A stretch of DNA of 37,535 nt, taken from IMG/VR virus record IMGVR_UViG_3300026885_000046, positions 1 through 37,535 of that record. One strand, given 5' to 3'. The notes under the pieces are model-generated. The model searched no databases and had not been told where the DNA came from. It worked only from the letters and a program-made list of their open reading frames with translations. The first letter of the stretch is position 1. Each line of letters starts with the position of its first letter. Of this stretch, positions 33,301 to 34,501 are shown in pieces. Made by a program: the position numbers and the translations under genes.

Positions 33301-33477
33301 ATGGAACTCAAATTAAAGTGGAACGTCAAAACCATTCGGAAGTCTAATGGGAAAGAAGTCCAAGTTTTTTACATATCTGTGCCCGCAAAGGTAGCTATTT
33401 TTTTAAAAGATCTAGACCCGTATCTAGACATAGAGAAAAAAATCATAACGTTTAGAGGTGGTGAGAAAAATGAGTGA
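33301..33477 (+). CDS. Small protein (58 aa), possible AbrB/SpoVT-like regulator
   Basis: MELKLKWNVKTIRKSNGKEVQVFYISVPAKVAIFLK...; not in the track; overlaps the start of the next gene. Confidence 0.65.
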   Translation: MELKLKWNVKTIRKSNGKEVQVFYISVPAKVAIFLKDLDPYLDIEKKIITFRGGEKNE

Positions 33478-34501
33478 AAAAGAATTAATGTTATTAAAAG
33501 ACTTAGTGAGGTACAGAGACGATATAATAAAGCTTAGAGTATCTCTGGGGAACAGAATAGGTGCAAAGAAAAACGGAAACGGTTGGACATTTAAGAAAAG
33601 GTACAGTATTTGCAGTAACAAGCACGCTGTATTGTTAAAAGAAGATGAGAAAAGGGAAAAATGTCCTATCTGCGGTAGTCCGGTAGAGATTGTAGAAGAA
33701 GAACCGTCACCGGAGCTTATACAACGTTTCTATGACCTACTAAATCAGCAAGAATTAGTAGAGGGGCTTATCGCTAATGAGGTTACGAAGTTTCCGGAGT
33801 TCGAATATCACCTAGCTTTCATCAAGGGGATAGGTCCTGCAAACGGTGCAAGGTTAATAGCTTTAGCGTTTCCACCACAATTCGGGTATGACGTTAATAG
33901 GTTCAGGAGTTACTCAGGATTAGCAGTGATGTTTCAATGCCCTAAGTGCGGATACTGGCAGTATGCAAGAAAATCATCAAATGGACGACCTGCAGTTCCA
34001 TCTGAGGAGGGTTGGAAGTGTCCAATAGACGGTACAAAGCTTATAGGTACTGCAGCAAAAAATGTACCATTTAACAGAGAAGTTAAAACGTTTCTGCTCG
34101 GAATACTAGCAAATAGCTTAATATTAGCAAATGGTGTTTATGCTAAACTTACGAAGTCATTCAAGGAAGAGGTTGCAGAAAAACATCCTGATTGGCCAAA
34201 GCGTAGGGTTCAGATGACTGCCGAAAGGAAGACAATATCTGTGCTAATATCTAATCACTTTGCAGTATCATTACATTATAGGGAGGGAGTACCGTTATCT
34301 GAGACTTATAAAAGAGTTCTTGGAAAAGAGTACGAAGTATTGAGAAAACATGAAGACTTCATCGAAGTACCGTTAACAGACTATTATGTTGACGTCAAGT
34401 CGACAAGCTATAAAGCGAAATTCGAAAAAGTAATTAAAGAGTTAGGAATTAACAGGGACGAGGTGATAACATGGCTTAAGAAGAAGAAAATAATCCAATA
34501 A
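33470..34501 (+). CDS. TasA-like protein: IS110/Nop-type RNA-binding domain, no RuvC, two Zn-ribbon insertions
   Basis: Coiled coil LKDLVRYRDDIIKLRVSLGNRI; IKGIGP, RSYSGL, FNREVK, YAK and AERK as in the Transposase_20/Nop fold; no N-terminal DEDD domain; abuts a dual-repeat array. Confidence 0.82.
   Translation: MSEKELMLLKDLVRYRDDIIKLRVSLGNRIGAKKNGNGWTFKKRYSICSNKHAVLLKEDEKREKCPICGSPVEIVEEEPSPELIQRFYDLLNQQELVEGLIANEVTKFPEFEYHLAFIKGIGPANGARLIALAFPPQFGYDVNRFRSYSGLAVMFQCPKCGYWQYARKSSNGRPAVPSEEGWKCPIDGTKLIGTAAKNVPFNREVKTFLLGILANSLILANGVYAKLTKSFKEEVAEKHPDWPKRRVQMTAERKTISVLISNHFAVSLHYREGVPLSETYKRVLGKEYEVLRKHEDFIEVPLTDYYVDVKSTSYKAKFEKVIKELGINRDEVITWLKKKKIIQ

Follow-up and report, generated by a model that had tools for sequence, protein, structure and literature searches.

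What could an RNA-guided protein that carries no nuclease do in a virus of hot springs? This question is raised by a 37,535-bp stretch of DNA, IMG/VR UViG 3300026885_000046, which is analysed here at its full length (hereafter, the window) and whose carrier is an uncultivated large tailed-spindle-type virus of Sulfolobales from a hot spring. On its plus strand lies an intact open reading frame (ORF) for a coiled-coil protein of the Tas (TIGR-associated) kind, directly followed by a repeat array. We read the gene as tasA, that is, as encoding the TasA-type effector of a dual-repeat TIGR-Tas system and an RNA-guided DNA binder, and put the probability of this reading at roughly three in four. 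By analogy, RNA-guided DNA binding or repression is the most likely function, and in the best-supported picture a TasA dimer would load guide RNAs (tigRNAs) of ~38 nt and bind ~18 bp of DNA on both strands without cutting.

TIGR-Tas systems are a recent discovery, and questions about their role in nature, about what they target and about how they gain spacers are current ones. TasA, TIGR arrays and their presence in viruses like Acidianus tailed spindle virus (ATSV) have already been published (PMC12045711); TIGR loci occur in archaeal viruses, and the ATSV array has been cited as a precedent (Faure et al., 2025, PMC12045711). The little-described part is the form found here, with two putatively zinc-binding insertions at the spots that touch the guide RNA and the target DNA in solved relatives. 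The word "zinc" is absent from the main text of both Faure 2025 (PMC12045711) and Xu 2026 (10.64898/2026.09.09.750476).

The tasA gene, its fold and its array

The reading frame could begin with a GTG at 33458 or with the ATG entered in Table 1. Nearly all homologues start with MSE[KR].L, so the ATG is taken as the real start and the product has 343 amino acids (aa); the extra N-terminal residues of some homologues number 20-40 only. Domain and family searches of the protein found no RuvC, DEDD or HNH domain, and neither the upstream ORFs nor the window's remaining large ORFs have a recognisable RuvC or HNH domain. A first-pass annotation, made from the sequence alone, had described a Tas-like protein that starts directly at the coiled coil and has no nuclease. 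The searches agree with it, and the coiled coil begins at residue 3, where the first predicted helix starts.

The fold was predicted with AlphaFold2 from an alignment of 29 relatives (59-89% identity to the window TasA), as a monomer without metal or nucleic acid, and the model reached a predicted local distance difference test (pLDDT) of 90.2 and a predicted template modelling score (pTM) of 0.84. Its N-terminal part consists of a helix (residues 3-30), a beta module (32-77) and a second helix (81-105), its core of helices 109-149, a further beta module (154-194) and helices 203-220, 223-238 and 244-272, and its C-terminus of short helices (276-291), a coil and helices 312-325 and 329-338. 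Among the structures in the PDB, Foldseek placed TaTasR on top (9mty_B, E=1e-4), followed by the SpTasH complexes (9vzx/9w03, E=3e-3 to 1e-2) and the IS621 bridge recombinase (8wt6, E=9e-3 upward), with no other significant match. The BFVD model A0A125SJ55 (72% identity) superposes on the model of the window TasA with a template modelling (TM) score of 0.99. The coiled-coil hairpin and Nop-type C-terminal domain by which Tas proteins are recognised appear both in the model and in the profile alignment to 9mty_A, and the lack of an N-terminal RuvC or HNH domain places the protein in the TasA subtype.

Then, could the gene be a decayed, non-functional bridge recombinase of the IS110 type, left without its RuvC domain? 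IS621 is among the fold matches, and there are weak family matches to NF033542 (IS110, E=7e-4) and to PHROG transposase families (E=0.02), the NF033542 match being limited to model positions 119-260, that is, to the coiled coil and the beginning of the C-terminal domain. However, the ORF is intact, with 23% of the columns invariant over 29 diverged relatives, and the upstream ORFs are conserved viral ones that hold no DEDD remnant and no RuvC fragment, the sign of decay for which the first-pass annotation had proposed to look. A regular multi-unit array always lies downstream, not a single bridge RNA, and no IS-like boundaries were seen. Moreover, the family was found solely on viral contigs, and 185,579 species-representative genomes contained no relative. 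With no RuvC remnant, with conserved upstream genes and with no cellular copies found, the decayed recombinase was rejected, and we regard it as extremely improbable. The earlier view that the protein is TasA-like and not a transposase therefore stands: it is a nuclease-less Tas type directly upstream of a TIGR array, and gene and array recur together in unrelated viral contexts.

Both arrays in Table 1 show the two alternating short repeats and the two ~9-nt spacers per unit by which TIGR arrays are defined. Array 1 begins 19 nt past the tasA stop codon, and its 38-nt unit is composed of a 13-nt edge repeat (UGCACAYNAGCAA), a 9-nt spacer A, a 7-nt loop repeat (UCAAUAA) and a 9-nt spacer B. 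A clean 13+9+7+9 logo emerges from the family's 166 distinct in-register units of 38 nt; in it, positions 1-13 are the edge repeat, 14-22 are variable, 23-29 are UCAAUAA and 30-38 are again variable. The edge repeat fits the TasR rule (UG C...G CAA, with an extra C:G pair). Rfam gave no match for the arrays, and the tas-proximal array end shows no stable extended RNA structure (z = -1.5); the lack of stable stems fits a dual-repeat array, not a stem-loop array. The same repeat type stands directly after tas in ATSV, in Sulfolobales virus YNP1 (SVYNP1), in the loci L007, L008 and L010 and in further IMG/VR loci, and an array accompanies tas in ATSV, in SVYNP1 and in no fewer than 12 viral loci from metagenomes. 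The distant ribbon-bearing relatives P0077, P0080 and P0084 have 35-36-nt arrays with canonical UGCGAGCC / UGAGGCC repeats. Like the window, the ATSV record has a second annotated repeat region.

Based on homology with the solved TasR, TasH and TasA complexes, a mechanism can be proposed. TasA would dimerise through its coiled coil, and each dimer would hold one ~38-nt tigRNA cut from the array, whose two spacers would each base-pair with a different strand of one uninterrupted DNA site of ~18 bp. Without a nuclease domain, the complex would stay bound and could block transcription or replication of a target in the host or in a rival element. The binder or repressor reading is based on this homology and on the bacterial TasA, which represses transcription reversibly and does not cleave DNA (10.64898/2026.09.09.750476). 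An RNA-guided repressor or roadblock had been among the roles suggested by the first-pass annotation, and the bacterial findings fit it.

Table 1. Coordinates of the tasA gene, of segments of its product and of the two arrays in the window (residue numbers are those of the 343-aa product).
Feature	Position	Strand	Basis
tasA gene (nuclease-less TIGR-associated protein, coiled coil + Nop domain, 343 aa)	33470..34501	+	ORF, NF052498, Foldseek, family profile
Putative zinc-ribbon module at the coiled-coil hairpin tip, residues 31-80, ligands C48/H52/C65/C68	33560..33709	+	model, invariance, TaTasR alignment
Wedge loop grown into a putative zinc ribbon, residues 150-202, ligands C157/C160/C184/D187	33917..34075	+	TaTasR/SpTasH alignments, invariance
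Conserved Tas C-terminal motif, residues 272-297 (EGVPL..TY280...LGK286, Y288-x5-H294)	34283..34360	+	SpTasH processing-loop counterpart by alignment
Clade-specific tail, residues 298-343, two helices (312-325, 329-338)	34361..34498	+	model, length vs typical Tas
TIGR array 1, ~18 units of 38 nt	34520..35260	+	repeat analysis
TIGR array 2, ~7 units, same repeat type, intergenic gap	21494..21759	-	repeat analysis

Putative zinc ribbons in the tip and the wedge

Where do the two insertions lie in the fold? All six Cys residues of the protein fall within the ribbon motifs, the first of which is C48-S-N-K-H52 ... C65-P-I-C68 at the tip of the hairpin, and the second, after S147-Y-S-G-L151, is C157-P-K-C160 ... 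C184-P-I-D187. The family profile aligns with TaTasR chain 9mty_A in two blocks, residues 81-153 on 140-213 and 201-268 on 229-294. The segments of TaTasR have been given as R139-D141 for the tip and G210-K230 for the wedge, with insertion 1 at Q247-T249 and insertion 2 at V267-S269 (Xu et al., 10.64898/2026.09.09.750476). The tip is 3 aa long in TaTasR and ~50 aa (residues 31-80) in the window TasA, while the second ribbon (residues 154-200) falls between TaTasR 213 and 229, within the wedge, which has 53 aa in the window TasA and 21 aa in TaTasR. A widened profile also aligns SpTasH at E=1e-18 (SpTasH 88-180 on 61-153 and 195-297 on 202-287), leaving 15 aa in the wedge of SpTasH where the window TasA has 49. 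Across the superfamily the wedge usually has 17-21 aa; lengths of 36-40 aa or 80-166 aa occur in other lineages, some of which bear different Cys clusters. The isolated ribbons gave sub-threshold zinc-ribbon matches only when compared with Pfam. A hidden HNH in the tip ribbon was also considered and was rejected, since the model has no beta-beta-alpha fold there, no HNH family matched and no DH/N/H pattern is present.

The relatives of the protein indicate how well these sites are kept. A search of 5.8 billion clustered proteins found 71 clusters at 60-89% identity, nearly all of which come from metagenomes of hot springs, a few bearing labels of Sulfolobus or Thermofilum metagenome-assembled genomes. 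With a profile, 307 relatives were retrieved from 1.84 billion representatives. The closest named proteins are a hypothetical protein of SVYNP1 (73% identical) and ATSV_B343 (72%). In the 29-relative alignment 80 of the 343 columns are invariant, and they include all eight putative metal ligands; a naive estimate of the chance for eight specific invariant columns is ~0.23^8, roughly 1e-5. The C/H/C/C ligand set of the tip is kept in 14 other 50%-identity clusters, and some clusters that do not align as CHCC have C-x2-C instead of C-x3-H. The second site is C/C/C/C in 9 clusters, and thus Asp187 of the window TasA stands for Cys. Since relatives have Cys at both positions, His52 and Asp187 are supported as metal ligands; since the ligands are invariant in the 29 relatives and kept in distant clusters, both sites are old and under selection. 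Conservation in the protein peaks in the wedge (22 of 53 columns invariant), and the invariant ribbon residues besides the ligands include the aromatics W39, Y45, Y162, Y165 and W182. In a tree of the Nop core (FastTree, midpoint-rooted, support values not examined) the proteins with a ribbon tip fall together, and no member has the space for an N-terminal nuclease.

In solved Tas complexes, the wedge holds the halves of the figure-eight tigRNA apart and grips the bases of box C, while the coiled coil contacts the heteroduplex seed. Most likely, the ribbons are rigid, heat-stable versions of the heteroduplex-contacting tip and of the spacer-separating, box C/D-clamping wedge, and they would stiffen and extend these nucleic-acid-contacting elements for work near 80 °C. 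The wedge would be a contact surface and not a mere staple, because it is highly invariant, aromatic residues included. Both ribbons had been noticed in the first-pass annotation, one at the hairpin tip and the other after SYSGL, at the place of the catalytic-serine loop of IS110 recombinases. Each of these observations was confirmed: the motifs are there, their ligands are invariant in the relatives, and the wedge is homologous to that loop.

The same residues could be read in a different way. The ribbons and the C-terminal tail might dock a second protein, so that the complex would serve as an RNA-guided recruiter of a trans-acting nuclease, of the viral transcription factor B (TFB) encoded 2 kb upstream or of a host factor. 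The invariant surface aromatics (those named above) and charged residues in both ribbons are in line with docking, as is the tail, which is kept across distant clades and has no known fold match, and in L008, in SVYNP1 and in the window itself, tas belongs to a closely packed string of genes on one strand that includes a TFB homologue. The string consists of TFB, a 77-aa ORF, a Dam-like gene, ORFs of 202, 130 and 58 aa, tas and the array. From TFB to the array it is common to the window, SVYNP1 and two 50-kb contigs; L013 and L014 also have the three genes directly upstream of tas. However, tas and the array are the sole common part in the ATSV-like loci, L007 and L010. Tas and array therefore form a self-contained module with no conserved partner gene beside it. 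In addition, no nuclease gene was detectable in the window, the ribbons lie at RNA- and DNA-contacting positions of the solved Tas complexes, and the invariant aromatics suit nucleic-acid contacts equally well. We consider a recruiter unlikely, and the ribbons are probably not docking sites; recruitment of a partner through the ribbons, another suggestion of the first-pass annotation, finds no support in the tip and the wedge, which are RNA/DNA-contact sites, or in the neighbouring genes, none of which is kept across contexts. It is slightly more doubtful still that the ribbon-bearing TasA clade of thermophilic archaeal viruses as a whole is more than a roadblock. Its invariant wedge ribbon and conserved tail would then bring another machine to the DNA site chosen by the guide, either the viral TFB together with the RNA polymerase of the host or a nuclease acting in trans, and the clade would be a natural RNA-guided recruiter or activator. 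Along related lines, guides might be matured by a non-canonical Tyr/Lys or a shifted Tyr/His site.

Guide maturation, targets and points of doubt

How would the binder obtain its guides? SpTasH was located in a Salicola phage record, and its Y289 and H296 were confirmed in the sequence. The most conserved C-terminal feature of distant Tas proteins, GL...PLY....LGH, aligns with EGVPLSETY280KRVLGK286, which sets Y289 of SpTasH on Y280 and H296 on K286 of the window TasA. The Tyr of the motif is kept in 36 of 40 distant homologues and is invariant within the TasA family. Eight residues past Y280, a second Y-x5-H (Y288, H294) is invariant in the family, and it is also kept in the sister clusters P0072 and P0073, both of which are without Y280. 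The C-terminal motif probably still matures the tigRNA, with Tyr280 and Lys286 or the nearby Y288/H294 acting instead of the Tyr/His dyad. Typical Tas proteins stop 10-20 aa past the motif, and consequently the true extension comprises only about residues 298-343 (~45 aa). The helical C-terminal extension of the first-pass annotation is thus partly upheld: residues ~298-343 are extra, whereas residues 272-297 belong to the known tigRNA-processing motif. The pattern ...PL.DY...K...F..I.ELGI..E... in the tail is common to P0072, P0073 and P0077, and the isolated tail had no match in Pfam. As an idea read from the letters only, the tail may be helix-turn-helix-like.

By the C-5 rule and from the 3' overhang of 8 nt, a target would be expected to consist of spacer A and, immediately after it, spacer B in reverse complement. 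When the spacers of the window were compared with the window itself, no match with one mismatch or none was found, and two-mismatch matches were not above those of shuffled spacers.

Several points weigh against reading the locus as an RNA-guided DNA binder. First, no target emerged when 214 spacer pairs of the family, taken in either order and with a gap of 0-4 nt, were compared with 177 kb of DNA from related viruses: there were zero matches with at most one mismatch, and two-mismatch matches did not exceed those of shuffled spacers. Exact 18-mers of spacer A plus reverse-complemented spacer B, from five units in IMG/VR and from one in GTDB genomes, gave chance-level matches only. The matches in GTDB genomes were in unrelated bacteria, all outside Sulfolobales; of those in IMG/VR none resembled the window family, and one that was compared with known phages resembled Pseudomonas jumbo phages. 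Second, the loop repeat UCAAUAA is without the UG...CC(A) box pair, which as a rule co-varies with the edge repeat, and shares only the first U and the final AA. Third, the canonical processing His is Lys (K286) in all 29 relatives. Fourth, the match to the NCBIfam family NF052498 ("TIGR-Tas system RNA-guided endonuclease", E=3e-10) scores 40.3 bits, far under the curated cutoff of 100 bits. Membership in TIGR-Tas therefore rests on the fold, on transitive homology and on the array; the two insertions and divergence probably account for the low score. Seven of the ten family-profile relatives tested do pass the cutoff, for example P0077 (114 bits), which carries both ribbons, and P0078 (156 bits). 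Finally, zinc binding, dimerisation, RNA loading and the absence of cleavage are all properties that we infer.

The lack of DNA targets would suit an RNA-directed, Nop5-like particle that aims its guides at RNAs of the host or the virus, in the manner of box C/D small ribonucleoproteins (sRNPs). The Nop domain is indeed shared with archaeal Nop5, and the archaeal host has native box C/D machinery. However, the protein has no N-terminal fibrillarin-binding domain, and the k-turn boxes are missing on the inferred transcribed strand of the arrays (RUGAUGA was found on neither strand of either array, and CUGA was absent from the inferred transcribed strand). Its nearest folds are the DNA-targeting TasR and TasH, not Nop5, and the characterised TasA proteins bind DNA. 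We hold the RNA-directed particle to be very unlikely, and RNA-guided binding of DNA is still the preferred reading.

Neighbouring genes, array variation and known systems

Related viral genomes with largely different arrays provide natural material for the study of TIGR array change. Across 14 loci there are 214 distinct spacer pairs, 37 of which are shared, and the spacer content of ATSV and SVYNP1 is almost wholly different from that of the window. The array at 34520-35260 and that of L008 at 6030-6900 have a collinear core (window units 6-15), inside which whole-unit insertions and deletions and single-base changes within spacers are seen; at the ends the units are unrelated on both sides, and L008 has ~30 more units. 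An irregularity at 35037-35066, where two edge repeats stand 17 nt apart with no loop repeat between them, is the same in L008. In the family arrays, spacer A is A-rich at its 2nd-4th positions (54-62% A), and spacer B is without such a bias. Array 2 lies between an acyltransferase gene (20508-21449) and an ORF at 21833-22204, ~12 kb from tas and in the opposite orientation.

The gene string before tas was compared between window 30460-34501 and L008 1946-6032. The TFB gene and the 77-aa, Dam-like and 202-aa ORFs are 93-98% identical, and the identity then falls to 82% for the 130-aa ORF, 71% for the 58-aa ORF and 76% for tas. The sharp boundary suggests recombination or fast divergence of the tas module. 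The 58-aa ORF (33301-33477, plus strand) has no family match, and its last 8 nt overlap with the beginning of tas. L008, SVYNP1, L013 and L014 keep it immediately before tas, and the ATSV-like loci, L007 and L010 lack it. The viral TFIIB/TFB homologue (30460-31473, plus strand), in the same tight string as tas, has an extra C-terminal C-x2-C...C-x2-C. The Dam-type methyltransferase ORF (31705-32085, plus strand) has 126 aa, against 142 aa in L008 and L009, and may be C-terminally truncated.

Elsewhere in the window, a 1410-aa ORF without family matches (1927-6159, plus strand) contains Gln-rich 75-nt tandem repeats and a 96%-identical 135-nt tandem duplication, the repeats being at 3238-3801 and 4206-4475. 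A 242-aa ORF (710-1438, plus strand) has a weak, sub-threshold match to the C-terminal end of a tyrosine integrase family (E=7e-5, 23 bits).

What, then, would this family add to what is known of Tas proteins? Dual-repeat Tas proteins have been reported to keep a compact Nop core (Xu et al., 10.64898/2026.09.09.750476). The present family is an exception to this trend, with its large ordered insertions in the tip and the wedge, its altered processing dyad and its atypical loop repeat. It would represent a naturally thermostable, nuclease-free, dual-repeat effector with a metal-clamped tip and wedge, which could serve as a test case for the roles of these two elements and possibly as a heat-stable programmable DNA binder.

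Among the nearest known systems is TIGR-TasA (FpTasA, PlTasA and MbTasA; PMC12045711, 10.64898/2026.09.09.750476), in which a solo coiled coil and Nop domain without a nuclease is likewise encoded beside an array of dual-spacer units, and for which RNA-guided DNA binding or repression is expected. In contrast to these proteins, the window TasA has a 50-aa tip and a 53-aa wedge, both putative zinc ribbons, ~45 extra C-terminal residues and Lys at the position of the processing His, its units have 38 and not 36 nt, its loop repeat lacks the UG/CC boxes, and its carrier is a hyperthermophilic archaeal virus. ATSV_B343 (AME30039.1) and the SVYNP1 protein ALG97163.1 are 72-73% identical over the full length, have the same ribbons and are directly followed by the same repeat type, but they are annotated as hypothetical only and their arrays are labelled "repeat_region" or "possible viral CRISPR locus".

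TaTasR (9MTY) and SpTasH (9W03/9VZX) share with the window TasA the coiled coil and Nop core, a GIGP helix-hairpin-helix and the EGLP..Y..LG C-terminal motif, and TaTasR is likewise archaeal with dual-repeat arrays. They differ from it in their N-terminal RuvC or HNH nucleases, their 3-aa tip and their 15-21-aa wedge, and near profile position 238 SpTasH carries an inserted beta-hairpin for which the window TasA has no counterpart. IS110/IS621 recombinases (8WT6) have a homologous coiled coil and C-terminal domain, the wedge corresponding to their catalytic-Ser loop, whereas the window TasA has no DEDD/RuvC domain and a putative zinc ribbon in place of the Ser-Gly catalytic loop, and its system has an array, not one bridge RNA, and is not a mobile element. 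Archaeal Nop5 of box C/D sRNPs (3PLA) also combines a Nop domain, a coiled-coil dimer and a bipartite guide; the window TasA, unlike Nop5, is without the fibrillarin-binding N-terminal domain, the k-turn boxes and the L7Ae site, and its target would be DNA.

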